Sequence record: NC_019407.1
Strand: one strand, 5' to 3'
DNA length: 64,000 nt
In this document: positions 1-52,331 of the stretch, one piece after another
Position numbering within the stretch: the stretch's first letter is position 1
Layout: the number at the start of each line of letters is the position of its first letter
Made by a program: the position numbers and the translations under genes
The notes under the pieces: model-generated
Seen by the model: the letters and a program-made list of their open reading frames with translations, nothing else
Told to the model about the DNA's origin: nothing
The model's database searches: none

Positions 1-779
1 GCGCCCTGGGCGAAGTTTTGTGGGACTACTATGACTTGCATTATTTCAAGCGCAAGCGGTCCGAGTGGAAGTACCAAAGATTTGCTTTGGTTTATCAACA
101 ACTTGCCGACGCGGCCTCGGACACCTCCATCGCGTCCAAGTTTCAGACCTATGATCACCTGCCGCACCTGGAGCCGAAGGTGCTCAAGGCCCGGCTTGAC
201 GCGGGTCACGCCGACGAGCGCGGGCGGCCGATTCCGGACCGCAAGGAGCACTTCCGGCGGGTGGTGGTCAGCGTCGACTCGGCCAACAAGCCCGGCGCCC
301 GCAACGACTACAGCGTCGCCCAGGTCTGGGGGGAGACCCACGCCCGCAAGCACTACCTGATCTACCAGGAGCGCAAGAAGGTCGACATCACCGGCCTGAC
401 CGAGATGATCGAGCGGGTGGCCAAGCGCTACGAGGTCGACGCCATCCTGGTCGAAGACAAGGGCAACGGCACCGCCTACATCCAGGCGCGGGGCCAGACC
501 GACAGCCAGCGGCGGCTCGCCCCGGCCCCGATCGAGGCGATCCAGGTCCCGAGCACCTATTCCAAGGAGTTCCGCTTCAACGAGATCGTCCCGATGATCG
601 AGGCCGGCGAGGTCTTCCTGCCGGGCAAGGCCCCGTGGCTCGACCTGCTGATCCGCGAAATCGGTCAGTTCCCCGAAGGCGCCCATGACGACCAAGTCGA
701 CGCCATGACGCAGTACCTCCGCTGGGCCAAGTCCAAGCGCACGCGGTTTGGCGCGCGCAAGGTCGGCTCGATGGGCTGA
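1..779 (+). CDS. terL: Terminase large subunit, C-terminal nuclease domain (5' truncated; frame open from window start)
   Basis: SVDSA...DYSV, ILVEDKGNG, SKEFR and HDDQVDAMTQ motifs typical of TerL RNase H-like nuclease domains. Confidence 0.9.
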   Translation, partial: ALGEVLWDYYDLHYFKRKRSEWKYQRFALVYQQLADAASDTSIASKFQTYDHLPHLEPKVLKARLDAGHADERGRPIPDRKEHFRRVVVSVDSANKPGARNDYSVAQVWGETHARKHYLIYQERKKVDITGLTEMIERVAKRYEVDAILVEDKGNGTAYIQARGQTDSQRRLAPAPIEAIQVPSTYSKEFRFNEIVPMIEAGEVFLPGKAPWLDLLIREIGQFPEGAHDDQVDAMTQYLRWAKSKRTRFGARKVGSMG

Positions 780-850
780 CGAGGCCCGTTAACCACGTTT
801 GTTAACCTCCGCCGGGGCCTTAACCCTAACACGGCGAGGGTTAACAGGCC

Positions 851-1005
851 AGGGACCCTTCGAAATTAACCTTTCGGGGACCCTGGGAAATCGTAAGGCG
901 GGGACCCTGGCCATTTTCCGCCTGGGGACCCTCCAAAATTCACCGTCGGGGACCCTGGGAAATTCATCTTCCGGGGACCCTGGCAAATTCAAAGCCGGGG
1001 ACCCT
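851..1005. repeat. Seven (A/G)GGGACCCT copies at 24-25 bp spacing
   Basis: Copies start at 851, 876, 900, 924, 948, 973 and 997, each followed by an A/T tract. Confidence 0.9.
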
Positions 1006-1013
1006 GGCGAATC

Positions 1014-1217
1014 ATGGAGCCGACGATGGCCGGATTTCTCAACCTGATCCCGAACCTCGCGCCGTTCGCGCTTTGGGGAATCCTCCTCTGGATCGCCGCC
1101 GAGGTGGTCTGGAGCGTCTGCCTCTGGGTCTATGGCCTGCGAACCCTGTTCAAGCTGCACCGTGACGATGTGGCCGAGGCCCTGACCCTGGAGCGGGCTC
1201 TGGCGCCGTTCGACTGA
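1014..1217 (+). CDS. Small membrane protein (67 aa)
   Basis: ATG start and a hydrophobic stretch (FALWGILLWIAAEVVWSVCLWVYGL). Confidence 0.6.
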   Translation: MEPTMAGFLNLIPNLAPFALWGILLWIAAEVVWSVCLWVYGLRTLFKLHRDDVAEALTLERALAPFD

Positions 1218-1286
1218 CCCAAGTCACGGACTGTAGGTTTCGTGACAAGGTGAGATATTCCACAACGATTTCAAAGGCTTACTGCG

Positions 1287-1535
1287 ATGTCGATCCGCAC
1301 GTTCTTCCACGATCTGGCCGTCCGTTTCGTCGTTTTGGGGTGGATTTTTGCCCGAAAACCGCTGAAATGGGCTCCAAAAGGGCATAATTTTCAGCCCAAA
1401 CCGCCGGTCCAGGTCGGCGCCCTGGCGGCCGGCTCGCTCCTCGCCCTCAGTCTGGCGCTCGGCGGGCTCTGGTTCCGCTTCACGTTTCCGGACAAAAGTC
1501 AAGTGGTCTCGCGCCGGCCGCAGGCTATGTCATAG
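1287..1535 (+). CDS. Small membrane protein (82 aa)
   Basis: ORF track; C-terminal hydrophobic segment. Confidence 0.5.
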   Translation: MSIRTFFHDLAVRFVVLGWIFARKPLKWAPKGHNFQPKPPVQVGALAAGSLLALSLALGGLWFRFTFPDKSQVVSRRPQAMS

Positions 1536-1596
1536 ACCGTGGGCTTCGTGACCAGATCACGCTTCCGTTACCGCTCCAGCCCTTGTGAGGCCTCGG

Positions 1597-1701
1597 ATGT
1601 TCGCCTTTCTCCGCCGGCTCAGCCTCGCCGCCGTCCATGGCGTGCTCTGGGCGATCCTCCTGGCGATGTACGCCGTGGGCGGGCCGCGCCGCGCGCCCTA
1701 A
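1597..1701 (+). CDS. 34-aa hydrophobic peptide MFAFLRRLSLAAVHGVLWAILLAMYAVGGPRRAP
   Basis: Read by eye; below the ORF-track cutoff; phage-like codon usage. Confidence 0.45.
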   Translation: MFAFLRRLSLAAVHGVLWAILLAMYAVGGPRRAP

Positions 1702-1782
1702 AGCGCCATATCTGACGCCTAAGGCCCCCTAAGGCCTCATCTGTGAGACATTCAACGCCCTCGTGTTCCTCTGAACGCGGGG

Positions 1783-1896
1783 GCGTTTTGACGTCGGCGC
1801 ATTTTTGACTTGACGCGCGAGCGTTTTGACGCGGGCGCATTTTCGATTCGACGCGCGAGCGTTTTGACGTCCGAGCATTTTTCAACTTGACGTCGT
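1783..1896. repeat. Three imperfect 38-bp tandem repeats beginning GCGTTTTGACG
   Basis: Units start at 1783, 1821 and 1859; most contain two TTGACG-like hexamers. Confidence 0.85.
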
Positions 1897-1921
1897 TCCA
1901 TTTACCGGGAGCGCCTTAGGG

Positions 1922-2088
1922 TTAACGCCGGCCGCCGAGCCCTGGGGCGATTTACCACCGCCACGTTAACCTAACGCCTGTTAACCTATCGGTTGTTAAG
2001 GTTAACGCCCCGTTAGGGTTAACGCCCCTTAACCCTGCCCGCGTTAAGGTTAACGCGCCCGCCGCCCGGCCCTACCCGTTAACCTTAA
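1922..2088. promoter_or_regulatory. Dense cluster of TTAA(C) CtrA-like half sites
   Basis: 11 TTAA in ~170 bp of otherwise very GC-rich non-coding DNA. Confidence 0.6.
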
Positions 2089-2199
2089 CCGCCAGACCCC
2101 CGCGCCCAGGCCCTACCCGGTAGGGCCTGACGGCCCTACCGGGTATGACCCCGCGCCCCGGCGGAGGCCAGGGACCGCCCCGGCGCTTTTTCGCGCCCG

Positions 2200-2231
2200 T
2201 TTACCTTTTGTTAACGTCTGGCCTCTAGGGT
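2200..2231 (+). promoter_or_regulatory. CtrA-box early promoter
   Basis: TTTA-N7-TTAAC-N10-TAGGGT. Confidence 0.75.
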
Positions 2232-2279
2232 CGCCCTTGTCCCCGCCGCACTCCCGCGCCGGGCAAGGAGCTTCCCGCC

Positions 2280-2465
2280 ATGGTCCCCGACTCGATCATG
2301 AACCCCCGCGACCACTTCCACCGCCTGCGCGAGGAAACCGCCCGCGCTCTGGTCGAGGCCTTCGCCGAAACCGACCCCGGCGAGGATTACCGCGCCGAGG
2401 AAAAGGCCGGCGCGTGGGTTGTCGCCTATTACGACGCGGCGGGCGAATTCGTCGCCTATCTCTAA
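2280..2465 (+). CDS. Hypothetical early protein (61 aa)
   Basis: SD AAGGAG, ATG. Confidence 0.75.
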   Translation: MVPDSIMNPRDHFHRLREETARALVEAFAETDPGEDYRAEEKAGAWVVAYYDAAGEFVAYL

Positions 2466-2489
2466 CCGCCTTCGCCCCCTGGCGCCGCG

Positions 2490-2521
2490 TTAACGGTTTG
2501 TTAACATGTCGGCGCCAGGGT
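2490..2521 (+). promoter_or_regulatory. CtrA-box early promoter
   Basis: Perfect TTAA-N7-TTAAC, then N10-CAGGGT. Confidence 0.75.
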
Positions 2522-2564
2522 CGCCCTAGCCCGGCGCGTCGCCGCGCCTTCGGAGAAAACCGCC

Positions 2565-3368
2565 ATGCTCTACACCCCCGCCGCCCGCCGCCTTCGCGGC
2601 TATCGCGAAACCGCCGCGAAGAACGCCGAAATTCACGCCCGCCCGCACATGGCCGGCAACGTCGCCGGCTACAACGAGTCGGTGTGGCCGACGACGGCGC
2701 TAGGCGTCGCCGCCAAGGCCGGCGCCTTCAAGCGCCCCGAAACCGCCGGCAACTGGTCGGAGGATCGCAAAGCCTATTACGCCCCCGCGTGGCCGGCCGG
2801 CTGGCGCGTGCTGGGCACGGCCGAAGAGGTCTGCCGCAAGGAAGGATCGCGCCGGGTGGAACATTCCGGATGGTACACGACGCCCGACGACTACAGCGCC
2901 ACGCTTTCGGGCTATGTGCTGCAAATCCCCGCCCGCGACGGGGTCGCCCAATACGTCGCCGGGACCGCCCATAGTGAATGGGACGGGGTGACCCTCTACC
3001 CCGCCGACCGCTACGACAACCCGCTTGACGCGGCGAGCGCCGCCGACCGTCACGCCGAACGCGACGCCGAAGAGGAACGCGAATATCAAACCGCGTGGCA
3101 AGCGGGCCAGCGCTACGCCGAACTCGGCGCCGAAGCCAAGGAGGCCCGCAAGGAAGCGCTGGCGATCCTCGCCGAACGCCGCAAGGTCAAGGGGCTGGAA
3201 ACCCCCGCCTTGTGCGGCGCGATCCGGGCGCAGGTCGAGGCCCTGCTAGGCCGGATCGAAGAGGCGCGCGAGGCCCGCGCCAAGCTCAAGGAAGGCGAGG
3301 ATTCGCGCCTCATGTTCTACCCCTCCGCCCGCCTCGTCGCGGCCTTCAATGACGGGGCGGCCGGGTGA
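2565..3368 (+). CDS. Hypothetical early protein (267 aa)
   Basis: SD GGAG, GC3-biased ORF. Confidence 0.8.
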   Translation: MLYTPAARRLRGYRETAAKNAEIHARPHMAGNVAGYNESVWPTTALGVAAKAGAFKRPETAGNWSEDRKAYYAPAWPAGWRVLGTAEEVCRKEGSRRVEHSGWYTTPDDYSATLSGYVLQIPARDGVAQYVAGTAHSEWDGVTLYPADRYDNPLDAASAADRHAERDAEEEREYQTAWQAGQRYAELGAEAKEARKEALAILAERRKVKGLETPALCGAIRAQVEALLGRIEEAREARAKLKEGEDSRLMFYPSARLVAAFNDGAAG

Positions 3369-3574
3369 AGGTCGCCCGCGACGCCTTCGCCGTGTTCTGG
3401 ACCCTCCCCGCCGGAGGGGTCCAATTTCATGCGGACATGAAACGGGCGCTCTACCCGACCGCCCGCGACGCCGCCCGCGCTTTTCGCGCCATGTTCCCCC
3501 GTGACCGCGTTCGGAGCGTCCGCGACGCCTCCGGCCGCTTCCTGGCCTTCAAGGAGTCCAACCCGTGCGCCTGA
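3365..3574 (+). CDS. Hypothetical early protein (69 aa)
   Basis: GTGA overlap with the upstream stop. Confidence 0.65.
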   Translation: MKVARDAFAVFWTLPAGGVQFHADMKRALYPTARDAARAFRAMFPRDRVRSVRDASGRFLAFKESNPCA

Positions 3575-3846
3575 CTAGCTACAACGTCAACGGAACCGGC
3601 TTTAAGGGCGGCTCCGCCCCGCCCGTCCCCGCCCAAGGCCTGACCGGGCACGCCGACGGCTTGAACCTTTGGGTTCCCTCGCGCGAGCATATCGCCGCCA
3701 TGCTCCCGCAACGCTGGCGCCACGCCTTCGCCCACGCGGCGTTTTGGTATGACGCGCACGACAACAAAAAGCCGTGCCGCGCCGACCTCTACGACTCGCG
3801 CGGCCGGTACCTGACTCAGGTCTGGGCGCACCCGGTTTTCAGCTAG
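3565..3846 (+). CDS. Hypothetical early protein (93 aa)
   Basis: SD AAGGAG before GTG. Confidence 0.7.
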   Translation: MRLTSYNVNGTGFKGGSAPPVPAQGLTGHADGLNLWVPSREHIAAMLPQRWRHAFAHAAFWYDAHDNKKPCRADLYDSRGRYLTQVWAHPVFS

Positions 3847-3852
3847 GCCAGG

Positions 3853-3880
3853 ACGCCCCGGAAGATTTTCCGGGGCGTTT
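3853..3880 (+). terminator. Intrinsic terminator-like hairpin
   Basis: ACGCCCCGGAA/TTCCGGGGCGT stem followed by T's, abutting the next promoter. Confidence 0.6.
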
Positions 3881-3909
3881 ACCTTTTGTTAACTTCTGGC
3901 CTCTAGGGT
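3878..3909 (+). promoter_or_regulatory. CtrA-box early promoter
   Basis: TTTA-N7-TTAAC-N10-TAGGGT. Confidence 0.75.
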
Positions 3910-3967
3910 GACTTTCGCCGCCGGGCAATCCCGCCCGCCGGACCCTCTTTCAAGGATTGCTCCCGTC

Positions 3968-5020
3968 ATGACCTCTCATTCCATGGTCGCGCACCGTTGG
4001 GCGCAGGACGACGAGAACGGCCGCACCGCGCGCGGCTTCAACATGTATTTCGAGCGCTACGGGCGCGGCGCCGACCGCGTCAACGTGATTTTTTCCTACG
4101 GGACTCACTTCCCGGCCGCCGCCTTCGTGACCGACGCGCACGGCCGCCGCGTGGTCCTCTACACGACGCACCGCCGGAGCGTTTCGACCGCGAAACACCT
4201 TTCCCACATCCGCCACGCGATTCCGTCGGGCGTGCCGGTGTTTTCCGTGCCGAACGTGTCGCGGATGCACAAGCCGGGCGGCGCGGGCGACTTCCACGGG
4301 GACAACCTGCGCGCCTATATCGAGAGCGCCGCCGGCCTCGCCGAAAAGGCCAAGCGCGCCCGCGTCAACGGCCCTTGGCTGCTTAGCCAAGCCCGCGACC
4401 AACTCGCCGAAGCGCAACGCTACGCCGACGCCTTCAAGGTCAAGGGCTTCAAGGTCCCGGCCTTGGAAGACGTCGCCGGCCAATGGGCGAAGATGACGGC
4501 CGCCAAGGCGCGGGCCGAAGCCAAGGCCCGCAAGGAAGCCGAAAAGCGCGCCCGCGAAGCCCGCGAAGCCGAACGGCTCGCCGACGCCGAAGCCTTCGCC
4601 GCTTGGATGCGCGGCGAGCGCCAGAGCGCCCCGTTTAGCTACCGGGTGCGCGATGACGGGACCGTCTATCTTCGCCGCTTCCGGGGCGTGGTCCGCGACC
4701 TGCGCAGCCAAGAGCGCGACGGCTCGCGCGTCGATGAACTGCAAACCTCGCAAGGCGCGGCCGTGCCGTGGGAACACGCGGTCAAGGCCTTCCGGTTCAT
4801 CAAGCTTTGCCGCGAACGCGGCGAGAGCTTCCACCGCAACGGCCGGGTGATTCGCGTCGGACACTTCCAAGTTGACGCGATCAGCCCGAACGGGGACATG
4901 ACGGCCGGTTGCCACCGGTTCGCGTGGGATGAAATCGAACGCATCGCCAGGGCCGAAGGGGTTTTCGACCTCCCCGCCGACGCCGGCGCCGTCGAAACCC
5001 GGCAAGCCGAACCGGCCTAA
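3968..5020 (+). CDS. Hypothetical early protein (350 aa)
   Basis: ATG at 3968 after SD AAGGA; the ORF-track start at 3908 lies in the leader. Confidence 0.8.
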   Translation: MTSHSMVAHRWAQDDENGRTARGFNMYFERYGRGADRVNVIFSYGTHFPAAAFVTDAHGRRVVLYTTHRRSVSTAKHLSHIRHAIPSGVPVFSVPNVSRMHKPGGAGDFHGDNLRAYIESAAGLAEKAKRARVNGPWLLSQARDQLAEAQRYADAFKVKGFKVPALEDVAGQWAKMTAAKARAEAKARKEAEKRAREAREAERLADAEAFAAWMRGERQSAPFSYRVRDDGTVYLRRFRGVVRDLRSQERDGSRVDELQTSQGAAVPWEHAVKAFRFIKLCRERGESFHRNGRVIRVGHFQVDAISPNGDMTAGCHRFAWDEIERIARAEGVFDLPADAGAVETRQAEPA

Positions 5021-5075
5021 GCCTCCCCGCCCCTCTCGCGCCCCGGCTCCCCGCCGGGGCGTTTTCGTGTACGCG

Positions 5076-5107
5076 GTAACCTTTTGTTAACTTCTGGCCT
5101 CTAGGGT
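5076..5107 (+). promoter_or_regulatory. CtrA-box early promoter
   Basis: GTAA-N7-TTAAC-N10-TAGGGT; leader nearly identical to the one at 3878. Confidence 0.75.
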
Positions 5108-5155
5108 GACTTTCGCCGCCGGGCAATCCCGCCCGCCGGCCAAGGATCGCAGACT

Positions 5156-5455
5156 ATGAATCTTTTCGTTGTCGCCATTGACCCCGCCCTCATCCCTTCG
5201 GCCGCCGGCTTTGTGGTCGCCTCCCCCTACGGGTGCGGCAAGTGGCGCGCGTGCGTCGGGAGCGAGGCGGACATGATCGCGCTTCGCGACAAGATGCGCC
5301 GCGCGCACCCGGCCCCGGAAGGCTACAGCGTCCAGCCCCTGGCGTCGTTCCTGGCCTATCTGGAGACGGTCGGGCAAAGCCCTTATGACCAGTTTCGCGC
5401 CCGCGACGCCGCCGCCCGCATCCTTGACACCCTGACAACGCACCTCGCCGCCTAG
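5156..5455 (+). CDS. Hypothetical early protein (99 aa)
   Basis: SD AAGGA, ATG. Confidence 0.75.
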   Translation: MNLFVVAIDPALIPSAAGFVVASPYGCGKWRACVGSEADMIALRDKMRRAHPAPEGYSVQPLASFLAYLETVGQSPYDQFRARDAAARILDTLTTHLAA

Positions 5456-5514
5456 CCCCGCCTAGCCCCCGGCCGCGCGCCGGGGGCGCTTTTCCCTCGA
5501 AAGGATCGCCGACC

Positions 5515-5823
5515 ATGACAACCCGTCTTATCGCCGTTCGCGCGCCGACCGCCGCCGAACTCGCCGACCCGTCCAGCCGCGCGGGCGGCGCCGAAGTCGT
5601 CTTTGTGCGGCGCGACCGCGAAGGCCGCACGCGCCTTGTGTTCGCCGCGACCTGCTACGGCTCATATCAGCAATGGGGCGAAACCCGCGACGTGCTCGCC
5701 GACAACGTCGAGGCGGTCACCGTCTGGGCCGAAGGTATGGCGGCCGTCGCCGACCTCATCGACGAGGACGACGATTTCGAGGGCGACGACGCCCCGGCCG
5801 AAGACGACGACGGGGAGGCGTGA
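5515..5823 (+). CDS. Hypothetical early protein with acidic C-tail (102 aa)
   Basis: SD AAGGA; DEDDDFEGDD tail. Confidence 0.75.
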   Translation: MTTRLIAVRAPTAAELADPSSRAGGAEVVFVRRDREGRTRLVFAATCYGSYQQWGETRDVLADNVEAVTVWAEGMAAVADLIDEDDDFEGDDAPAEDDDGEA

Positions 5824-5826
5824 GCC

Positions 5827-6246
5827 ATGCGCACAACCAAGGCTCAACGCTTCGCCGCCATCGCCTTTGACGCCCTGGCCAAGGCCCTAAGCGAGCCGCG
5901 CCAAGCCGTCGCCCGCGTGACCAAATGGGAGGGCGCGGGTCATAGCTTCGCCAACCTGCAACGCGATTATGAGCGGTACGGCCCCGGCTCGCGCTCATGG
6001 TTCGGCCGGGCTGAAATGCGCTTCTTTGGGACGCGCCTAGAGGCCGCGCCGCTGGATTTCCCGGCGCTGGGCTGCACCCTCTTTCTGACCTCCGAAACCC
6101 CGCCCGGCGCCGGCCGGGTCTGGACCCTTCGCGCCTATGTCTGGGCTTCGGCCGATATCACCACGCTAACCCATGGCGACGAAACCGACGCGGCGACCGC
6201 GCAAGCGGCCTTTGACCTGCTTTGGAGGGTCCTTTCGCAGCGGTAA
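5827..6246 (+). CDS. Hypothetical early protein (139 aa)
   Basis: ATG 3 nt after the previous stop. Confidence 0.7.
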   Translation: MRTTKAQRFAAIAFDALAKALSEPRQAVARVTKWEGAGHSFANLQRDYERYGPGSRSWFGRAEMRFFGTRLEAAPLDFPALGCTLFLTSETPPGAGRVWTLRAYVWASADITTLTHGDETDAATAQAAFDLLWRVLSQR

Positions 6247-6274
6247 CCTTTTGTTAACTTCTGCCCGCTAGGGT
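6243..6274 (+). promoter_or_regulatory. CtrA-box early promoter
   Basis: GTAA-N7-TTAAC-N10-TAGGGT. Confidence 0.75.
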
Positions 6275-6322
6275 CTTCTTGCGGCCGGGCAATCCCGCCC
6301 GGCCGCCCAAGGATTGGACCGC

Positions 6323-6595
6323 ATGACCCGCGCTCAAGCCCTCGCCGAAATGAACGCCCTTCCCGGTATCATCGCCTCCTTTGAGCGCGAGACGGGTGAA
6401 TATCGCGTCACCCTGCGCTTTGGTCCGCTCCCCATGGGGCGCGGCGCCCAAGAGTGGATGCACGCGCGCCGCGAAGCCGTCGCCAGCTACAGCGACGACA
6501 AGGCCGACGCCCTGGCCACCGCCCGCGACATGTCCGCCCGCTGGGAGGCGATGAGCGCCGAAGAGCGTTCGCGCCTCTATCATAACCCCGCCTAA
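6323..6595 (+). CDS. Hypothetical early protein (90 aa)
   Basis: SD AAGGA, ATG at 6323. Confidence 0.7.
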   Translation: MTRAQALAEMNALPGIIASFERETGEYRVTLRFGPLPMGRGAQEWMHARREAVASYSDDKADALATARDMSARWEAMSAEERSRLYHNPA

Positions 6596-6661
6596 AGCCC
6601 CGCGCGCCGCCCTGGCCTTCGCCGGGGCGGCTCCCTCAACCCCTCGCAAGGATCGCACCCC

Positions 6662-6946
6662 ATGACCGCCCGTAAGCCCCTGACCAAGGAACAAAAGGCC
6701 CGCCGCCGCGCGACCCGTCGCGCCGCCCGCCTCAACTGGTCGGATGAGCGCCGCGCTCGCGAATTCGAGCGTCAAGCCCGCTTCTTCCTGATGATCGCCA
6801 CCCACGCCCAAGGCGCCGGCCAAGGCCAGGAAGCCGCCCGCCTCGCCACGGTCGCGCAACGCAAGGTCACAAACTGGCGCATGGCGCAGGCCTGCGCCCG
6901 GATTAACGCCCTGGCCGCGCATCCGTTCGCGGCCGTGGTCGCCTAA
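6662..6946 (+). CDS. Hypothetical basic early protein (94 aa)
   Basis: SD AAGGA; Arg/Lys-rich N-terminus. Confidence 0.7.
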   Translation: MTARKPLTKEQKARRRATRRAARLNWSDERRAREFERQARFFLMIATHAQGAGQGQEAARLATVAQRKVTNWRMAQACARINALAAHPFAAVVA

Positions 6947-6959
6947 GGAGGCCCGCCCG

Positions 6960-7142
6960 ATGACGCACCCTCACGCCCTGGCGCTGATCGCCCTCGCTGA
7001 AAAGGTGTTGCCGCTTACCCGGCTGCACCCGCTCGACCAACGCGCCGCCGCCGTCGATCTAATCGGCGACCTCTACCGCCTCGCCGACGATATCGACGCG
7101 ACCCCGCAAGCCGCCGCCCTGGCGCAACCGAAGGCCGCCTAA
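6960..7142 (+). CDS. Hypothetical early protein (60 aa)
   Basis: SD AAGGAGG. Confidence 0.75.
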   Translation: MTHPHALALIALAEKVLPLTRLHPLDQRAAAVDLIGDLYRLADDIDATPQAAALAQPKAA

Positions 7143-7145
7143 GCC

Positions 7146-7736
7146 ATGAACCCGAACCGCTACCGCCTCGCGCCCCGCGACCGCTTCAGCCGTGAGCTTT
7201 CCGAAACGCTCTATCAGGCGGCCGAAGCCGTCGCCCGCGTGATTCCGCTCATGCCGGAGTCCGCCCCCGATGAGCGCCGCGCGCTGGGCAAGGTCCGCGC
7301 CGACCTTCTAACCCATAGCGCCGGCGCCCTTGTTCCCAAGCCGCCGGCCGCCGTGCTCGCAACCCTCATTTGGGTTGTCGAGATGGCGCAAGATCGCGCC
7401 ACAAACGCCGATTTCAACACCGCCCAAGAGGGACTCGACGAACACGAGTCCCTCGCCTTTGTCGCCGACTGGCTGGAGGCCGAAGGCCTAGACGTGACGC
7501 CGATTCGCAACGCGCAACCGTCCGCCGACGCCCTGGCCGAACTCGCCGCCCGCCGCGACGCCGAACAAGCGGCGCTAGACGCCTTGGAGGCCGAAGCCCT
7601 GGCCGAAGCGCCGGGCGACGTGATCACCGACATCTTGCGCCCTTATCTGGGCTCCATCCTGGCCGAAACCCACGCCGACGACGTGCTAGACGCCCTCACG
7701 CGCGCCGGCTTCCAAATCACCCGCAAGGAGGCCTAA
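7146..7736 (+). CDS. Hypothetical early protein (196 aa)
   Basis: ATG right after the upstream stop. Confidence 0.75.
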   Translation: MNPNRYRLAPRDRFSRELSETLYQAAEAVARVIPLMPESAPDERRALGKVRADLLTHSAGALVPKPPAAVLATLIWVVEMAQDRATNADFNTAQEGLDEHESLAFVADWLEAEGLDVTPIRNAQPSADALAELAARRDAEQAALDALEAEALAEAPGDVITDILRPYLGSILAETHADDVLDALTRAGFQITRKEA

Positions 7737-7741
7737 AGCCC

Positions 7742-8311
7742 ATGACCGACTCCGCCAAGATCACCGGCGCGCTCGCGCTACTCGCCGTCGCGGCCGATAA
7801 TCTCCGCCAAGGCCCGGCCATGTCCAAAGCCGCCGACAACGTCACCAACGTCTGTAACTACGCCCTGACGCGCGCGGCCATGCTCAAGGCCGCCGACCAA
7901 ATCGGCGAGGCGCTGGAGGCGCTGGGCGCCCTGCAAGCGGGCGGCTATGTGATCGCCCGCCGCCGCGACGTTTTCACCGATGCGGGCGAGAAGCTGGGCG
8001 ACCTGTTGGCGGCGCTTTATGACGCCGTCCCGAACTACGCCGTAAGATCGCAGCGCCTCGCCGACGCCCTGGCCCCGGCGCGAAATTACGTCTATCAGCC
8101 CCGGTTCCGGGTCAAGCTGGACGCCGCGCCCGGCGCGCTTTTGACCGACTGCGACACGGGCGCAACGGTCTATTTCCAGCCGGGCGACGACGCCGACGCC
8201 TTCCGGGCCGAATTCGCCCCGTGGGTTCACGCCGCCAACGTGACGGGCGACGGCGCGGCCCTGGCCTCGATGATGAACCCGACCGCCGAAGAGTATTTCA
8301 GCCCCGCCTAA
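7742..8311 (+). CDS. Hypothetical early protein (189 aa)
   Basis: SD AAGGAGG; ATG at 7742 within the ORF-track frame 7370..8311. Confidence 0.75.
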   Translation: MTDSAKITGALALLAVAADNLRQGPAMSKAADNVTNVCNYALTRAAMLKAADQIGEALEALGALQAGGYVIARRRDVFTDAGEKLGDLLAALYDAVPNYAVRSQRLADALAPARNYVYQPRFRVKLDAAPGALLTDCDTGATVYFQPGDDADAFRAEFAPWVHAANVTGDGAALASMMNPTAEEYFSPA

Positions 8312-8492
8312 GTCATCATTCCTACCGTCTATGACTTGTCACCGGCCGAAGTCTTACCCGGTGACAGTCTGGGCAAGTAAAGCTCACTCTGGATTTTATG
8401 ACTTAGCGCAAAGGATTGAAATTGCTCGAAAAATTCCTAGAAGCTCACAAAGTCGTTTTCTGGCTGCTCTTGCTGGCCTGTTTGTGGCGCTT

Positions 8493-8525
8493 TTAACGGT
8501 TTGTTAACCCCTGGCCCTCTAGGGT
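8493..8525 (+). promoter_or_regulatory. CtrA-box early promoter
   Basis: Perfect TTAA-N7-TTAAC, then N11-TAGGGT. Confidence 0.75.
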
Positions 8526-8579
8526 CGAATTCCCGGCGCGGCAATCCCGCCGCCCGGCCTTCCTTCGGAGCTTCTGATC

Positions 8580-9026
8580 ATGTTCGCTTCCGTGACCCTT
8601 CCCGCCCATGACGCCCAAGGCCTGAGCCTCGAAACCGTCCACATGGTTTTCGCCCGTGAACTGGCGCAACACTTCGAGCACGTAATTTCCGCCCCCGTGA
8701 TCGAAAGCTGGACCGACGAGGAAACCGGCGCCGTGCAAGAGCAAGCCGCCGTTTGCTTCACCGTTTCGGCGACCCCGGCCGCGTGGGAAGCCAAGGGCGG
8801 CCGGCTCGCGCGCCGGCTGGAAAACCTCGCCGCGCGCTATGCCGCCGACTGCGACGCCCCGGCCCTGACTGTCACCCATTGCGACGGGCAAACGGTCTAT
8901 GTCGGCGCTCTGGAAGCCCTGGCGCGCCCCGCCCCGGTGCAAGGCCCGACCCGCGCGGCGGACCCGGCTTTCCTCCCCCGCCAGCGTGAAGACAAGGCCG
9001 CCCGCTTCGATCGCCTGACCGCCTAG
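8580..9026 (+). CDS. Hypothetical early protein (148 aa)
   Basis: SD GGAG, ATG. Confidence 0.75.
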   Translation: MFASVTLPAHDAQGLSLETVHMVFARELAQHFEHVISAPVIESWTDEETGAVQEQAAVCFTVSATPAAWEAKGGRLARRLENLAARYAADCDAPALTVTHCDGQTVYVGALEALARPAPVQGPTRAADPAFLPRQREDKAARFDRLTA

Positions 9027-9042
9027 CCCCTGGCCTCCCCCT

Positions 9043-9076
9043 AGCGCACCGCCCCTAGAAAGGCGGTGCGCTTTTC
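9043..9076 (+). terminator. Intrinsic terminator
   Basis: AGCGCACCGCC/GGCGGTGCGCT stem followed by TTTCT. Confidence 0.75.
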
Positions 9077-9084
9077 TGTGTCTG

Positions 9085-9117
9085 TTTACTTGTTGTTAAG
9101 GAATAGCCTGCTAGTGT
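9085..9117 (+). promoter_or_regulatory. CtrA-box early promoter
   Basis: TTTA-N7-TTAAG-N11-TAGTGT. Confidence 0.65.
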
Positions 9118-9168
9118 CTCCTTGTCGGCGGACGCATCCCGCGCCCGCCCCTTTCTGGATCGCTTCCC

Positions 9169-9561
9169 ATGGCTCGCCCCTCTGACCTGCTCAACGTCAA
9201 CGCCGCCCGCGTCCTGGCTTGCCTTGAGCCTATCGCCGCCGCCGCTAAGACGGCCCCGGCCGCCGACCGCGCCGCCCTTTCCTACCTGCTCGACGCTGGC
9301 GAGTATGTCGCCGCGTGGCGCCGCAACCTCACGGAAACCGACCGCCGCAAGGCCTATGGCGCGGCCTGCGCCGCCGAAGCCCTGGCGCTCGCCAACGCCT
9401 ATCAGCCCGCCACCCTGCAAGGCGGCGCCGTCCGCCGCGCTCTGGGCGCCTATGCCGCCGCCCTTAAGGTCCTGCTAGACGGGGAGCCGGTTAAGGCGGT
9501 CCGCGCCGCCGAAGGCGCGGCGCTTTCGGTCCGCGCTCGCTACGCCAACACCCGCCTTTAA
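9169..9561 (+). CDS. Hypothetical Ala-rich early protein (130 aa)
   Basis: ATG after GGAT; GC3 bias. Confidence 0.7.
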   Translation: MARPSDLLNVNAARVLACLEPIAAAAKTAPAADRAALSYLLDAGEYVAAWRRNLTETDRRKAYGAACAAEALALANAYQPATLQGGAVRRALGAYAAALKVLLDGEPVKAVRAAEGAALSVRARYANTRL

Positions 9562-9589
9562 CCTCTTGTTAAGACCTCCCGGCTATGGT
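9558..9589 (+). promoter_or_regulatory. CtrA-box early promoter
   Basis: TTAA-N7-TTAAG-N10-TATGGT. Confidence 0.7.
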
Positions 9590-9615
9590 CGGGAGGTCGC
9601 AAGGAGACACCCGAC

Positions 9616-9810
9616 ATGACCCGCCCCGGCCCCGCCTCGCTCTTGACCCCGCAAGCCCGTTTCTCGTCGCCGCGCGTCCTGATCCTTCCGGGCGCGGCTC
9701 CCATGCCGATTCGCCAGCCGCGCGGCCTTTGCGCCGTCGAGTGCGTCGCCCTTGGCGTGACGCTGGGCGCGGCGCTCTACCTCGCCGCCCGCGTGTTCGG
9801 TCTGGTCTGA
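9616..9810 (+). CDS. Small protein with C-terminal TM helix (64 aa)
   Basis: SD AAGGAG; hydrophobic C-terminus. Confidence 0.65.
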   Translation: MTRPGPASLLTPQARFSSPRVLILPGAAPMPIRQPRGLCAVECVALGVTLGAALYLAARVFGLV

Positions 9811-10196
9811 CCAGACCCCCGCCCCGCCCCCGGTCGGACCGGTCGGGGGTGTGTCCCATAATGACACACCCCCCGCCACCTAGTATCTTTTTTGATTCGG
9901 AGGGACCCAAAGGCCCCCTACGTTAACCATTTTTGGCGGCGCCCCCCGGCGCCTACGGATCATTTTGAAAAATCGCGTTGACAAAACCAGCGATCAACGT
10001 CAAGGATCGTGACGTCGAGCAGCCCCGCCCGACACGGGCGGCCCGCCCCCCATTCGCCGCCCGACGGCCCCATCTCCGACGTCCACCGGGGGTGGGGCCT
10101 TTTCATTTTCCAGCCAGGGGACCCAAGGCCCCCTGGCTTTGTAAATCGGACCGCCAAAAGGTCCCTCCAAAAATTTTCAAAACCAGAAACGCCCGG

Positions 10197-10225
10197 TTGA
10201 CACTTCCAGACTTGGCTTCTAAGTG
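10197..10225 (+). promoter_or_regulatory. Sigma70-type promoter for the middle-gene operon
   Basis: TTGACA-N17-TAAGTG upstream of SD GAGGAG and the ATG at 10258. Confidence 0.65.
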
Positions 10226-10257
10226 TTGCGCGACGACACGCAATCGAGGAGCCCGTC

Positions 10258-11004
10258 ATGACCGACGACATCACCAACGCCACCCCCTACCACAAGTTCA
10301 CGCCCTACGACTGGCGCGGCTATATCGAGTTCCCGGCCACGGTCGATCTGGCCAAGCTGGTCCAGACCATCTACGCCCGCTCGACCCCCAGGGGCCTGGG
10401 CTTCCTCCACTTCACCCCCGGCGATCTGGACGAGGGCCGCGTCACCACCGCCATCTATGACGCCCAGGAACGCTTCACCGAGGCCGAAGCCCAGTCGGCG
10501 CTCGACTTCAACGGCGAGCCCCGCGACAGCCGTCACCGCTTCTTCGACTTCGACTATGTCGACGGCCGGGCGGTGAAGTTCAACCTCTACCGCGACCTCA
10601 ACGATCGCCGCTTCTACTGCGAACTCGACTGGTTCGACCATTCCGAGTATGACGTCTTCGATCTGGTCGCCACCCTGCGCGACCTGTCCGACGACGCCAC
10701 CAAGGCCTATCTCGACGCGGTCGCCGCCGCCAAGGCCCAGAAAAAGGCCGACGAGTTCGCCGCGACCGAAGCGCGCGCCCTCCTCCTGGTCCGCGCCCTG
10801 AAAAACGTCATGGGCGGCTCGGAGACCATCCCCCGCGAGGAGTTCTATCGCCGCTACGGCGGCAAGCCGAGCGTCATGTACGCCGCCGACGCCCAGGATC
10901 GCCCCTATTTCGACTACGCGTTCAACCGCGACCACACCATTGTCACCGTCCGGCCGGACGAGGGCGGCGAGGCCCTCTACGCCCGCGACGCCGTCCCGGC
11001 CTGA
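10258..11004 (+). CDS. Hypothetical protein (248 aa)
   Basis: SD GAGGAG; strong GC3 bias. Confidence 0.85.
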   Translation: MTDDITNATPYHKFTPYDWRGYIEFPATVDLAKLVQTIYARSTPRGLGFLHFTPGDLDEGRVTTAIYDAQERFTEAEAQSALDFNGEPRDSRHRFFDFDYVDGRAVKFNLYRDLNDRRFYCELDWFDHSEYDVFDLVATLRDLSDDATKAYLDAVAAAKAQKKADEFAATEARALLLVRALKNVMGGSETIPREEFYRRYGGKPSVMYAADAQDRPYFDYAFNRDHTIVTVRPDEGGEALYARDAVPA

Positions 11005-11008
11005 TCCC

Positions 11009-11236
11009 ATGAGCGACGAACGCGGCCCCGGCCACACCAAGTTCTACGCCTCCGAGGACGGCAAGCACGTCATGCGCTGCCTGAACAACGACCCGGCCTG
11101 GGTCAGTCCGGTCGTCCATGACGAGGCGCCGCTGCCGGCCTGGAAGATCGCCTCGATGTTGCAGGACGCCTATAATCTCGGCAAGCGCGAACAGCAGGAG
11201 ATCATTCGCCGCGCCCTTGGAGTTCCCGGACGATGA
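11009..11236 (+). CDS. Hypothetical protein (75 aa)
   Basis: ATG at 11009; ATGA overlap with the next gene. Confidence 0.7.
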   Translation: MSDERGPGHTKFYASEDGKHVMRCLNNDPAWVSPVVHDEAPLPAWKIASMLQDAYNLGKREQQEIIRRALGVPGR

Positions 11237-11907
11237 CCGAACTGTCCCTTGGCGAGCGCTATGCGCGGGAGGCCCTGGCGGTCGCCCTGTTTGGCCAGCG
11301 CCGCACGCCTTCGTCGATCGGCGGCGCGCCGGCCTCGCTCTGGCACGAGATCGCGCCCCAGCAGCGCGGAAGCTGGCGCGAGCAGGCCGATCGCCTCGTC
11401 GCCGAGCAGGCGGGGGACGCCACGGCCGTCACCAAGGACCAGACTCGCATCCTGGAACCCTGGGAGGCGGCGCTGAAGGCCCTGGCCGACGGCAAGGACC
11501 CGGACGACTACTACGGCGGCGATGACCACCGCGCCGATCGCCCCATTTCGACCTACTACCGCACCACAGTCACCTACGACTACGCCCTGACCGACGAGAC
11601 CCTGCTGAAGGCCTGGGCCAGCGCCGAGCGCCAGGGTCTTTCCCTGCCGGCCTTCCCGGAAGACGCCTTCTCGGGCGCGGCGATCGACGAGACCAAGTTC
11701 CGCACCCTGACCGCCTGGGAGGCGGCCGTCATGGCGGTCACCCAGTACGACAAGGCCGAGCGCTTTGACGCCTACCGCTTCAAGGTTCCGTTCGAGTTCC
11801 GGTTCACCGCCCAGACCCTGGCGGAGTTCAACGACCTGCTGACCGCCGCTGATGAGCAAGCCCTGCCCAACCGCGCGCCGGCCGACAACAAGAGGTACCC
11901 CGCCTGA
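11233..11907 (+). CDS. Hypothetical protein (224 aa)
   Basis: Translationally coupled ORF. Confidence 0.8.
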   Translation: MTELSLGERYAREALAVALFGQRRTPSSIGGAPASLWHEIAPQQRGSWREQADRLVAEQAGDATAVTKDQTRILEPWEAALKALADGKDPDDYYGGDDHRADRPISTYYRTTVTYDYALTDETLLKAWASAERQGLSLPAFPEDAFSGAAIDETKFRTLTAWEAAVMAVTQYDKAERFDAYRFKVPFEFRFTAQTLAEFNDLLTAADEQALPNRAPADNKRYPA

Positions 11908-12179
11908 TGCGCCGTCTCGCCATCCTGACCCTCGCCGCGATCACCCTGACCGCCTGCGCCGAGCAGACCAAGGTGGACGATCAGGTCTACGCCACGCTGG
12001 AGAACGGCTGCGTCGTCCACAAGATCGTTCGCCAGGAGAAGGGCAGCATGTTCGTCGAGGAGGTCTACACCACCGTCTGCCCCAACGGGGCGACCCGGAC
12101 GGAGTGGGAGACGACCAAGATGGTCGGCAAGACGGTGACCGTCGAACGGCACGCCACCGAAACCCCGGCGACGCGCTGA
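11907..12179 (+). CDS. Putative lipoprotein (90 aa)
   Basis: MRRLAILTLAAITLTA-C signal peptide with lipobox. Confidence 0.75.
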   Translation: MRRLAILTLAAITLTACAEQTKVDDQVYATLENGCVVHKIVRQEKGSMFVEEVYTTVCPNGATRTEWETTKMVGKTVTVERHATETPATR

Positions 12180-51226: not shown

Positions 51227-51304
51227 GCGCGGGTAGCTCAATGGACCCAGAGCAGCCGTCTTCTACACGGTGGGTTGGGGGTTCGAGTCCCTCCCCGCGC
51301 GCCA
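51227..51304 (+). tRNA. tRNA-Arg(TCT)
   Basis: Loop CT-TCT-AC. Confidence 0.9.
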
Positions 51305-51307
51305 AAC

Positions 51308-51650
51308 TTGACGGGCGATGTCGAATCGCCGAGGATCAAACCGTAGGCCTCTTCCCGTGGGCCTGACATATACGTCCGCCAGCACTGCCATTCCGCGTCA
51401 GCGGGCGCGGCGCGAGGAGGGTTAACCCCTCGTTGTCGTGCAGCCGGGTGGTGTGGACGTCCCAACGTGATCTTCGAACGCGGCATGCCGTGGAGGGGTG
51501 ATCGGATGGCGAACCAAGGGACACCTCCTTATCCTAGCCTGGGCCGCATGGGGCTCCGCTGGGAGAAACGGCCTGACCCGACCGGAGGTGCGTCCAGGAT
51601 GCCGGCTCTCCATGCCAGAGTCTCGTGGACTAGGGTCTGAAATTTTTTCT
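51308..51650 (+). ncRNA. Promoter plus candidate ~310-nt structured RNA
   Basis: TTGACG-N17-GAGGAT; many nested stems; ORFs have atypical codon usage; ends at TTTTTT. Confidence 0.4.
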
Positions 51651-51662
51651 GGCGCTGATGTG

Positions 51663-51794
51663 TTGACACTCCTCGGAGGCTCGGCTAAAACCAGCAGCGT
51701 CAGAGCGGCGTTGGACCACGAGGTCCGCCGCGAGCTTCTGCGTTGTCGTCAGGAACGGCCCGTCAGCAATCCCGCTGGCGGGTCGTTTCGTTTT
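51663..51794 (+). ncRNA. Promoter plus candidate ~100-nt sRNA with its own terminator
   Basis: TTGACA-N17-TAAAAC; rod hairpin; 13-bp terminator with AATCCC loop followed by TTCGTTTT; no ORF. Confidence 0.55.
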
Positions 51795-51830
51795 GGGCGC
51801 AATGCGACGTTCAGTCCAACCATGGGTAGT

Positions 51831-51869
51831 GTCATGAATCTTGACTTTCGGCGCTTATTCCGGTAGCTT
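51831..51869 (+). promoter_or_regulatory. GANTC/-35 promoter
   Basis: GTCATGAATC-TTGACT-N17-TAGCTT. Confidence 0.7.
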
Positions 51870-51914
51870 GCCCGACATCAGCAAACGCTCACAAGTCGGG
51901 GACCGAGAGCCGTC

Positions 51915-52331
51915 ATGTCGCAAGACCACCACGGCTCGTCCTCGGGCCAAGAACGCATCTACCAGAAACTGGATGAGCTTGGCTCCATGCACGCGCGCAC
52001 CCGTGAAGATATTGCCCGCATCCAGGAGATGATGCGAGCGGTCGGTTCGTCGCAGGAGCGAATCGAAAAGCGCCAGGACCATTTCGAACGCGAAATCTGG
52101 CGCGAGATGGAAGATCGCGCCGCGCGCACGAGCGCCCAACTCGACGAAATCAAGAGCCACACCAACCTGCGGATCGAGGAGATCGAGGCCAAGGTCGACA
52201 CGATCCGCGAAGAGCGGATCGCCGAAAAGGCCCAGTGGCGCGGCCCCGAGAAGGCCATCGCCGCCCTGGTCGCCGTCGCCGGGGCCATCGCCGCCTTCGC
52301 CACGATCCTCACTTTCCTGAAGGGACACTAG
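51915..52331 (+). CDS. Coiled-coil protein with C-terminal TM helix (138 aa)
   Basis: Heptad-rich body; AIAALVAVAGAIAAFATILTFL. Confidence 0.75.
   Translation: MSQDHHGSSSGQERIYQKLDELGSMHARTREDIARIQEMMRAVGSSQERIEKRQDHFEREIWREMEDRAARTSAQLDEIKSHTNLRIEEIEAKVDTIREERIAEKAQWRGPEKAIAALVAVAGAIAAFATILTFLKGH

Follow-up and report, generated by a model that had tools for sequence, protein, structure and literature searches.

The T4-type PeSL, which Arbiol and colleagues reportedly described in 2010, are said to be units of an early promoter plus a stem-loop that mediate modular shuffling. Hairpins of the ompA 5' UTR type are 5'-terminal stem-loops that protect mRNA from 5'-end-dependent RNase E decay, and their loop sequence is classically irrelevant. 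The nut sites of phages lambda and P22, present twice per genome, each contain the N-bound boxB, made up of a 5-bp stem and a GNRA-like purine pentaloop, and a boxA (CGCUCUUA-like) that is transcribed beside it. In staphylococcal regulatory RNAs, a UCCC motif serves as a C-rich seed loop. In CcnA, an RNA of the bacterial host of the phage considered here, the CCCC of loop A pairs with GGGG near start codons (PMC8959179).

How do the early leaders of a phiCbK-like phage compare with these systems? The window, a stretch of 64,000 nucleotides, is 100% identical to bases 1-64000 of Caulobacter virus Magneto (JX100812; NC_019407.1), a phiCbK relative. The 10-kb terminal repeat of this phage contains eight CtrA-box promoters (Table 1; the box of the eighth begins at 9558), which are the same promoters whose CtrA boxes have already been published (PMC9437464). 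The phiCbK gp005 and gp018 promoters were demonstrated to be bound and activated by CtrA (Mascolo et al., 2022, PMC9437464), and promoter 6 of Magneto is the ortholog of this CtrA-dependent gp018 promoter. Six of the eight promoters are followed by a hairpin with an (A)AUCCC-type loop. This agrees with the first-pass annotation, which had described six GC hairpins with a near-invariant loop after eight early promoters; all six were recovered, with boundaries at most 1 nt from those proposed. The hairpin behind promoter 2 shares the cassette plan and falls outside the AUCCC class, and the leader of the 9558 promoter has no hairpin. The cassette reads, in order, an upstream terminator (where present), the CtrA box, a CTAGKGT -10 element, the hairpin, a spacer of 2-12 nt, the Shine-Dalgarno (SD) sequence and the ATG. 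Its transcription start is predicted at the G of a conserved CTTG, and its hairpin has a GC stem of 5-11 bp and the loop (A)AUCCC. Terminators lie directly 5' of cassettes 3, 4 and 7, giving transcription units with a hairpin at both ends.

Table 1. Early-leader elements of the Magneto terminal repeat and the candidate small RNA, in window coordinates; each promoter interval opens at the first base of its CtrA box, and bit scores are from the covariance model.
Feature	Position	Strand	Predicted start	Sequence and structure	ATG	Bits
CtrA-box promoter 1	2200-2231	+	G2239	box TTTACCTTTTGTTAAC 2200-2215; -10 CTAGGGT 2225-2231		
Leader hairpin 1	2242-2263	+		loop ACUCCC; 7 bp, one C.C mismatch; SD AAGGAG	2280	27.3
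CtrA-box promoter 2 and GC hairpin of another class	2490-2548	+		perfect TTAA-N7-TTAA box 2490-2505; hairpin GGCGCG-UCGC-CGCGCC 2533-2548	2565	
CtrA-box promoter 3	3878-3909	+	G3917	overlaps U-tail of terminator 3851-3880		
Leader hairpin 2	3918-3941	+		loop AAUCCC; C.C mismatch; SD AAGGAUU 12 nt downstream	3968	37.1
CtrA-box promoter 4	5076-5107	+	G5115	terminator 5038-5062 upstream		
Leader hairpin 3	5115-5140	+		loop AAUCCC; SD AAGGAUC 3 nt past stem	5156	36.7
CtrA-box promoter 5	6243-6274	+	G6281/C6282			
Leader hairpin 4	6281-6306	+		perfect 10-bp stem; loop AAUCCC; SD AAGGAUU 4 nt past stem	6323	39.7
CtrA-box promoter 6	8493-8525	+	about 8532	perfect box		
Leader hairpin 5	8533-8557	+		loop AAUCCC; bulged C; pyrimidine tract, then SD GGAG	8580	32.3
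CtrA-box promoter 7	9085-9117	+	G9124	terminator 9043-9072 upstream; -10 CTAGTGT		
Leader hairpin 6	9127-9149	+		pentaloop AUCCC; A.C mismatch; SD GGAUC	9169	28.5
Candidate phage small RNA	51698-51797	+		sigma-73-type promoter TTGACA..GCTAAAAC, about 51664-51692		

Like the T4-type PeSL, the eight repeated promoter/stem-loop units of Magneto are short regulatory cassettes set in a plastic region amid small early genes of no known function, and evidence of exchange and duplication is likewise seen. The cassette appears to have been duplicated and exchanged among early genes, as reshuffling by recombination would predict: whole cassettes are replaced before orthologous genes, Ccr29 has duplicated units, and the Magneto cassettes at 3878 and 5076, which bear leader hairpins 2 and 3, are identical in sequence, assembled RNA-seq contigs breaking there. 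However, the stem-loop of PeSL is a terminator, whereas here the terminator is separate and upstream and the conserved hairpin lies inside the transcript, downstream of the promoter and with no U-run. The Magneto cassette promoter, unlike that of PeSL, also depends on the host cell-cycle regulator CtrA. No prior description of the early-leader hairpin was found in the literature; the phiCbK genome paper (PMC3556154) mentions no hairpin, stem-loop or conserved motif, and the report on CtrA sites in phiCbK-like terminal repeats (PMC9437464) no hairpin, stem-loop, leader or inverted repeat.

The leader hairpin is a genuine element that is conserved in several phage genera. With both strands of the 64 kb searched, a covariance model gave seven matches of 27-40 bits, the next match scoring 18 bits, and in relatives all matches were on the + strand. 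The 10-mer GCAATCCCGC occurs five times against 0.39 expected, a count reached in none of 100 shuffles. The folding energies of the hairpin leaders are ordinary for their GC content (z from +1.4 to -3.2, the latter for leader hairpin 4), and no Rfam family matched the leaders within positions 1-12000 at E up to 1. The stem structure is strongly supported by covariation. Among 26 distinct hairpin copies from 11 phages, 84.6% of stem cells were found to be paired, compared with 64.2% in shuffles (0 of 500 reaching the observed value); both sides change in eight of the nine stem pairs, and slid registers are only 36-53% paired. It is base pairing rather than stem sequence that is conserved in these hairpins. 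The bulged C of leader hairpin 5 is a C.C mismatch in phiCbK, and a relative has a C inserted after 8552.

The survey covered 90 scored units across the 11 phages, with 43 distinct promoter-plus-hairpin sequences in the AUCCC class. The hairpin was found in Shapirovirus, Poindextervirus and Colossusvirus (TerL about 53% identical) and in one unit of Brevundimonas phage Bajun. In Brevundimonas phage Bambus, about 25 CtrA-box promoters precede short leaders that lack it, indicating that promoters of this type can do without the hairpin. Conservation within the cassette peaks at UCCC and the two GC pairs that close it: the information content is 1.85 bits per column for UCCC and 1.8-2.0 for the closing pairs, whereas the CtrA box reaches 1.58, the -10 element 1.59 and the flanks about 0.8. 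The apparent conservation of the loop is inflated by cassette copying, since copies of a loop class within one genome often have their stem in common too. In Colossus, for example, six AUCGG, three CGG and three AUCCC copies have identical stems inside each class. Other loop classes at the same cassette position are AUCGG, CGG, CUGGAAA and UCGC.

The same apex is found on a candidate small RNA outside the early leaders. This RNA would consist of a covarying first hairpin followed by a 16-bp terminator hairpin (51752-51789), the apex of which, GC-AAUCCC-GC, is the motif of the leaders (28 bits; z -4.6). It is conserved in BL57, BL10 and Rogue, the terminator loop reading AAUCCC, UUCCC or AUCCC while the stem covaries, and no Rfam family was matched between 51300 and 52000 at E up to 10. 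Its only tie to the leaders is the loop that they have in common. The likeness to C-rich seed loops such as those of CcnA and the staphylococcal RNAs, namely an exposed UCCC-type loop complementary to G-rich ribosome sites, is relevant chiefly to this candidate; unlike a seed loop, the leader loop is part of the mRNA and shows no covariation with the SD that follows it.

Where does the hairpin lie on the early message? At the host ctrA P2 promoter, the full CtrA motif is at -39 (PMC4287350). When the 5' end of each box was set to -39 by this rule, 30 of 43 units had a G at the start, and in 36 of 43 the stem began 0-3 nt past the start, which would make the hairpin 5'-terminal. In predicted minimum-energy folds the SD is partly or wholly unpaired, with short weak helices touching it in three of the six leaders. 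A stem-loop placed 0-3 nt from the predicted 5' end and followed by an accessible ribosome site resembles the ompA-type stabilisers, as does its occurrence on short transcripts ending in a terminator hairpin. It differs from them in that conservation in the cassette is highest at the loop and closing pairs and in that the element recurs on many genes.

The leader hairpin most likely protects or tags early messages. On balance, we favour the view that each is a 5'-terminal stabilising stem-loop with a C-rich loop that doubles as the recognition site of a trans-acting factor. An early mRNA transcribed from a CtrA-activated promoter would start with the hairpin after 0-3 unpaired bases. The stem would block 5'-end-dependent attack, that is, pyrophosphate removal followed by RNase E entry, and would keep the neighbouring ribosome site unpaired, so that short mRNAs with a 5' hairpin and a 3' terminator could be stable and well translated right after DNA entry. 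Stabilisation alone calls for no fixed loop, which speaks against this combination; the loop is probably also a sequence-specific handle, because UCCC and its closing pairs outrank the promoter elements in conservation and recur on the candidate small RNA. Such a handle might allow one trans factor, protein or RNA and of phage or host origin, to act on all the early messages together, for instance in early shut-off. Of the functions proposed in the first-pass annotation, the 5' stabiliser and the protein-binding site are thus retained as the best candidates, and the translational pseudoknot is not supported.

Recognition might also be the only function, although this is a less probable reading. 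The hairpin would then be a sequence-specific site of the coat-protein, RegA or boxB kind, or an endoribonuclease target, with stabilisation incidental; one phage or host factor would switch all early messages on or off, and the small RNA would be a decoy or second target. The persistence of the loop and closing pairs across genera on differing stems and the reappearance of the apex on the small-RNA candidate both fit this, as do a recurrent C.C mismatch or bulged C, which 11 of the 26 copies have 5-6 bp beneath the loop, and the fall of phiCbK early transcripts after a peak at 15 min (PMC10688885). However, no candidate binding protein was identified among the terminal-repeat proteins: a Pfam search of 18 of these returned only DUF7447 and a sub-threshold LytR_C match, with no RNA-binding or N-like protein. 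Other loop classes, moreover, stand before orthologous genes without obvious loss, and cassette copying explains part of the loop conservation. The suggested likeness to boxB is functional at most. The nut sites likewise place a short GC hairpin, conserved in its loop and variable in its context, on early phage transcripts, and terminators follow early units in both, but the loop here, A(A/C)UCCC or AUCCC, is pyrimidine-rich, 5-6 nt long and not GNRA-like, stems reach 5-11 bp, there is one hairpin per promoter, and the boxA-like CYCUUG lies upstream of the predicted start. The first-pass annotation had also noted complementarity between the loop and the downstream ribosome-binding site, and a C-rich loop pairing with its own SD would gate translation. 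The complementarity is literally true in Magneto (AAUCC/GGAUU before the 3968 and 6323 genes, AUCC/GGAU before 5156 and 9169, CUCC/GGAG before 2280), with the 8580 gene, as had been remarked, a misfit that matches no further than UCC/GGA, but it is not maintained in homologs. The AAUCCC loop of the gp012 family is constant over SDs of GGAUU, GGAUC, GGAG, GGAAAG or CGGAAC, and the gp004 family keeps GGAG under ACUCCC, GAUCCC, AAUCCC and ACUUCC, so that the supposed compensatory change of ACUCC with GGAG does not hold and the loop-RBS covariation on which the proposal had been hung was not found. In every loop there is a UCC or UUCC to complement the GGA of any SD; among 42 distinct leaders, 18 could pair over 4-5 nt and 24 over 3 or fewer, and the mean match to the own leader (3.48) equals that after permutation (3.42). 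GGAU-type SDs do follow hairpins in 18 of 42 leaders versus 2 of 31 other promoter units, counts that are not independent, and one cassette swap (ACUUCC/GGAG in Swift, AAUCCC/GGAUC in BL57) runs as predicted. Nevertheless, five copies with a 4-5-nt match (e.g., those at 2200, 5076 and 6243) have connectors of 3-4 nt after stems of 7-10 bp, which by general pseudoknot geometry would be too short to span the stem, and in the three Colossus AUCCC copies the SD lies 2-3 nt past a 5-bp stem and matches the loop only as UCC:GGA. An SD-sequestering pseudoknot or translational operator is not supported by complementarity, compensatory change or connector length, and loop-SD gating is judged very unlikely.

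It is similarly improbable that the 10-mer, at about +11 to +20, acts as DNA, as a double-stranded site or cruciform at which a repressor or roadblock would shut early promoters, with the inverted repeat around it secondary. The -10 element and the loop are a fairly constant 14-18 bp apart, and G.U pairs give little evidence of strand (two G.U versus three A.C inside stems). However, the asymmetric core sits exactly at the apex of a covarying inverted repeat, as RNA recognition predicts; the arms vary more than a single dimeric DNA binder would allow, a terminator hairpin remote from every such promoter has the same apex, and every copy is on the transcribed sense strand. The lowest probability is assigned to a loop without function, carried by a mobile promoter cassette and spread by recombination or gene conversion as the T4 PeSL are. 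The identical Magneto copies, the Ccr29 duplications and whole-cassette exchanges, and the uniform stems within Colossus classes are all compatible with a passenger, but the loop stays constant as the stems change in a compensated way, it is kept in genera with little DNA identity between their terminal repeats, and it recurs in the unrelated context of the small RNA.

The first-pass annotation had placed a hairpin with a near-invariant loop behind six early promoters, and six such hairpins were found at those sites, both by reading the sequence and by an automated search 3' of every CtrA-type box. They form an AUCCC class, in which a GC stem carries an (A)AUCCC-type loop. The 10-mer GCAATCCCGC occurs in 5 copies in the window versus 0.39 expected. 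A covariance model trained on 26 distinct copies matched 7 sites at 27-40 bits on both strands of the 64 kb, namely the six leaders and 51757-51784, and the next match scored 18 bits. All 7 belong to the 26 training sequences and therefore match by construction; the informative result is that no other site exceeds 18 bits.

Features of the Magneto early region and the candidate small RNA (inferred starts follow the -39 rule described in the text)
Feature	Coordinates	Strand	Details
Leader hairpin	2242-2263		loop ACUCCC; CtrA box from 2200; inferred start G2239
Leader hairpin	3918-3941		loop AAUCCC; CtrA box from 3878; inferred start G3917
Leader hairpin	5115-5140		loop AAUCCC; CtrA box from 5076; inferred start G5115
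Leader hairpin	6281-6306		loop AAUCCC; CtrA box from 6243; inferred start C6282 (G6281)
Leader hairpin	8533-8557		loop AAUCCC; CtrA box from 8493; inferred start C8532
Leader hairpin	9127-9149		loop AUCCC; CtrA box from 9085; inferred start G9124
Terminator and CtrA box	3851-3893		intrinsic terminator 3851-3880; U-tail continues directly into the box
Terminator and CtrA box	5038-5091		intrinsic terminator 5038-5062; 12-13 nt to the box
Terminator and CtrA box	9043-9100		intrinsic terminator 9043-9072; 12-13 nt to the box
Terminator and CtrA box	2182-2215		weaker terminator-like hairpin 2182-2197; U-tail continues directly into the box
Candidate phage small RNA	51698-51797	+	promoter ~51664-51692, TTGACA..GCTAAAAC

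The terminal repeats of Karma, phiCbK, Ccr5, Ccr29, Swift, Rogue, BL10, BL57, Colossus and Brevundimonas phage Bajun were compared, and alignment of the 26 distinct AUCCC-class hairpins needed a gap only at the pentaloop. Across their nine-pair helix, 84.6% of cells are paired versus 64.2% in shuffles, with 0 of 500 shuffles reaching the observed value; 8 of the pairs show both-sided changes, and slid registers give only 36-53% pairing. The folding z-scores of the leaders (+1.4 to -3.2) do not stand out, since shuffles of any such GC-rich sequence also fold well. Judged by sequence comparison, the leader stem is thus a real, selected structure, the case for which rests on covariation. A C.C mismatch or C bulge lies 5-6 bp below the loop in 11 of the 26 copies. 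Counts of G.U versus A.C, considered as evidence for strand, were uninformative. In phage BL57 the stem at 6484-6519 is lengthened to 14 bp (CUUGG...CCAAG) and takes in the AAGG of the Shine-Dalgarno (SD) site, making this the sole copy whose own stem clearly occludes the ribosome site.

Over bases 1700-9700 the window is 100% identical to Caulobacter virus Magneto (JX100812), with unchanged coordinates, and it is accordingly treated as Magneto bases 1-64000. Magneto, a phiCbK-like siphophage, has 25 further similar Caulobacter phage records (78-97% identity), and its hairpins lie within the ~10-kb direct terminal repeat, which starts inside the large terminase gene. Each leader hairpin is preceded by a CtrA box (TTWAC-N6-GTTAAS), ~10 nt and CTAGKGT. 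CtrA was shown to bind and activate the phiCbK gp005 and gp018 promoters, and CtrA sites are dense in the terminal repeats (Mascolo et al. 2022, PMC9437464). That paper does not mention a hairpin, stem-loop, leader or inverted repeat, the phiCbK genome paper (PMC3556154) mentions no hairpin, stem-loop or conserved motif, and another text search found no earlier account of the leader hairpin. The CtrA promoters are therefore already published, and the hairpin on them apparently had not been described. Eight CtrA-box promoters are present in Magneto, six of them with an AUCCC-class hairpin. The unit whose box starts at 2490 carries a GC hairpin with a different loop, UCGC, and the unit at 9558 has no leader hairpin and a palindrome across the -10. 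This palindrome is a perfect 10-bp inverted repeat (9573-9598, + strand; GACCTCCCGG..TCGGGAGGTC), its arms covary among phages (CCTCCC/GGGAGG versus CCCCCC/GGGGGG), and four Bajun promoters (3640, 4084, 5129 and 7472) have a similar one; a role as operator or as promoter hairpin is possible.

Intrinsic terminators lie immediately 5' of three cassettes, and a weaker terminator-like hairpin precedes a fourth. Since they lie immediately 5' of the next CtrA box, terminator and promoter make up a compact unit, and the early region reads as a chain of short units, each opening with a hairpin at its 5' end and closing with a terminator. At the left end of the terminal repeat there are three repeat arrays (875-1012, 1775-1892 and 1965-2095), including a 24-nt GGGGACCCTGG-type repeat in 5.7 copies and a 38-nt repeat in 3.1 copies; the GTTAAGGTTAACGCCCC-type arrays contain many CtrA-like TTAAC half-sites and have no downstream gene.

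At the CtrA-activated ctrA P2 promoter, the full CtrA motif begins at -39 (Zhou et al. 2015, PMC4287350), and this rule was used to place start sites in 43 distinct promoter-hairpin units. The predicted start falls on a G, that of the conserved CTTG, in 30 units, and the first paired base follows it by 0-3 nt in 36 of the 43. From this spacing we infer that the hairpin is 5'-terminal. The conserved CYCUUG was also considered as boxA, and was set aside because it lies upstream of the inferred start. As an anti-SD pairing with CAAGG 3' of the stem, it fits unit 2200 and BL57 unit 6450 and is not general; such a role would require a start farther upstream than inferred.

The best-supported reading is a 5'-terminal, stabilising leader stem-loop whose apex is recognised by a factor. 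The stem-loop would stabilise and insulate the short early mRNAs, and the C-rich apex would additionally be bound by a trans-acting factor. The information content of the loop UCCC is 1.85 bits per column and that of the closing pairs 1.8-2.0, compared with 1.58 for the CtrA box, 1.59 for the -10 and ~0.8 for the discriminator and outer flanks. With an apex consensus of GC-A-(A/C/none)-U-(C/U)-C-C-GC, the loop appears to be the most constrained part of the cassette, and this bears on the rival reading that the hairpin is a passenger, without function of its own, on a mobile cassette. Copying of cassettes speaks for a passenger. Units 3878 and 5076 are identical throughout promoter and hairpin, and assembled RNA-seq contigs of a phiCbK-like infection break there; Ccr29 has duplicated units, and different phages put different cassettes before orthologous genes. 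In Colossus, copies share a stem within each loop class (AUCGG in six, CGG in three, AUCCC in three). Because same-genome copies of a class often share stems, copying adds to the apparent conservation. T4 PeSL cassettes show a like duplication and exchange, whereas the conserved hairpin of the phiCbK-like cassette sits inside the transcript.

Pairing of the loop with the SD in a pseudoknot, with ACUCC before GGAG as a compensatory change, had been proposed for the Magneto leaders, and it did not survive comparison of homologs. Units were sorted by downstream protein. In the gp012 family the loop is AAUCCC throughout, and the SD is GGAUU in Magneto and Ccr29, GGAG in Karma, GGAUC in Ccr5, GGAAAG in Swift and CGGAAC in Rogue. 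In the gp004 family, GGAG follows ACUCCC, GAUCCC, ACUUCC and, in BL57, AAUCCC; since all four loops share this SD, the match of ACUCC to GGAG does not reflect compensation. The longest Watson-Crick match of a loop to its own leader averages 3.48 nt versus 3.42 nt in permuted pairs, and it does not exceed 3 nt, the pairing of UCC with the GGA present in every SD, in 24 of 42 leaders. Among copies whose match reaches 4-5 nt, there are five with the SD just 3-4 nt past a 7-10-bp stem, and in the Colossus copies it lies 2-3 nt past a 5-bp stem; by general pseudoknot geometry, connectors of 2-4 nt are too short for this pairing. In favour of a link, GGAU-type SDs are commoner after AUCCC-class hairpins than in other promoter units (18 of 42 versus 2 of 31, units that are not independent). 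GGAUCGC also serves hairpin-less genes as a ribosome site. An extended ribosome-site motif, (A)AGGAUCGC, recurs at 5500-5515, at 6648-6662 and in many relatives, before early genes with and without the hairpin, and pairing with the 16S 3' end would not fully account for it.

Another rival reading makes the conserved element a site in DNA, and a candidate small RNA away from the early region bears on this. The ~100-nt candidate lies between the tRNA cluster and the ORF at 51915-52331, forms two strong hairpins (folding z -4.6) and ends in a 16-bp terminator hairpin (51752-51789) with the leader-identical apex GC-AAUCCC-GC, followed by a U-rich tail. It is conserved: its counterparts in BL57, BL10 and Rogue have covarying stems and the terminator loops AAUCCC, UUCCC and AUCCC, respectively. 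The persistence of this loop type on covarying stems speaks for the apex being a motif at the RNA level. Rfam gave no match for the leaders (1-12000) or for the candidate (51300-52000). The candidate's C-rich apex is reminiscent of the host CtrA-dependent RNA CcnA, a C-rich loop of which base-pairs with GGGG close to start codons (PMC8959179). A search for complementary GGGAUU or CGGGAU around the start codons of the window gave nothing convincing. A second small-RNA-like unit lies at the right edge of the terminal repeat (9975-10112, + strand). It has a TTGACA-type promoter, its RNA is structured (z -3.65) and its terminator (10066-10099) is strong; Rfam gave a single, weak match (sX13, E 0.37).

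In a further rival reading the hairpin is a pure operator, serving mainly as a binding site, with any stabilising effect a by-product. None of the 18 terminal-repeat proteins is a recognisable RNA-binding protein, Pfam giving only DUF7447 and a sub-threshold LytR_C. The product of gp006 (3365-3574, + strand, 69 aa) is much better conserved than its neighbours, with 71-84% identity in Swift, Rogue, BL10, BL57 and Colossus (71% in Colossus, where its homologue comes first behind an AUCCC-hairpin promoter). It was not found in the compared regions of CcrSC, Bambus and Lacusarx, which lack the AUCCC-class cassette set, nor in that of Bajun, though Bajun has one such hairpin. It has no known domain in Pfam and no function in Atlas.

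The leader hairpin is a real, conserved RNA element on published promoters, with no prior description found. In phiCbK, the classic Caulobacter model phage, the terminal-repeat genes are expressed first and are tied to the cell cycle via CtrA; an RNA element on nearly all of their messages would give the proposed "lytic deferment" circuit a post-transcriptional layer. A joint scheme, which we consider rather unlikely, is that the apex tags the CtrA-dependent pre-early regulon of phiCbK-like Caulobacter phages for one trans-acting factor, for which the small RNA competes or with which it cooperates, as an early-to-middle timer; if true, this timer would be post-transcriptional and layered on host cell-cycle control of transcription. 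The ~25-nt element offers a compact handle for finding a factor for early-gene stability or shut-off, and the leader a portable 5' module for Caulobacter expression; a conserved candidate small RNA with the shared loop is also brought to notice.

The AUCCC class was found in Shapirovirus, Poindextervirus and Colossusvirus (TerL 53% identical to that of Magneto), and once in Bajun. It is absent from the compared terminal-repeat region of CcrSC, where promoters are of another type, from the 11 kb 3' of the terminase gene in Lacusarx, and from Brevundimonas phage Bambus despite ~25 CtrA-box promoters with short CAUCAAC leaders. The hairpin is therefore a lineage-specific addition and not a requirement of CtrA promoters. 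Many CtrA-box promoters of both Bambus and Bajun have a short conserved leader, (U)CAUCAAC, replacing the hairpin, and in one unit of Swift, Rogue and BL10 the same UCAUCAAC forms the loop of a hairpin (record L003, 6292-6311). In an IMG/VR scan for TTGTTAA-N20-40-GCAATCCCGC, the only real members were the known isolates Karma, Rogue and BL10, and the other 68 loci were mostly chance matches. Three IMG/VR contigs of ~52-54% GC (L047, at 879; L076; L077) show no detected protein similarity to Magneto (L077 ORFs compared). In their leaders an identical GCGGC-AAUCCC-GCCGC hairpin follows a TTGTTAAC..TATAAA-like promoter and precedes a GGAGG ribosome site, which may reflect chance or a wider motif.
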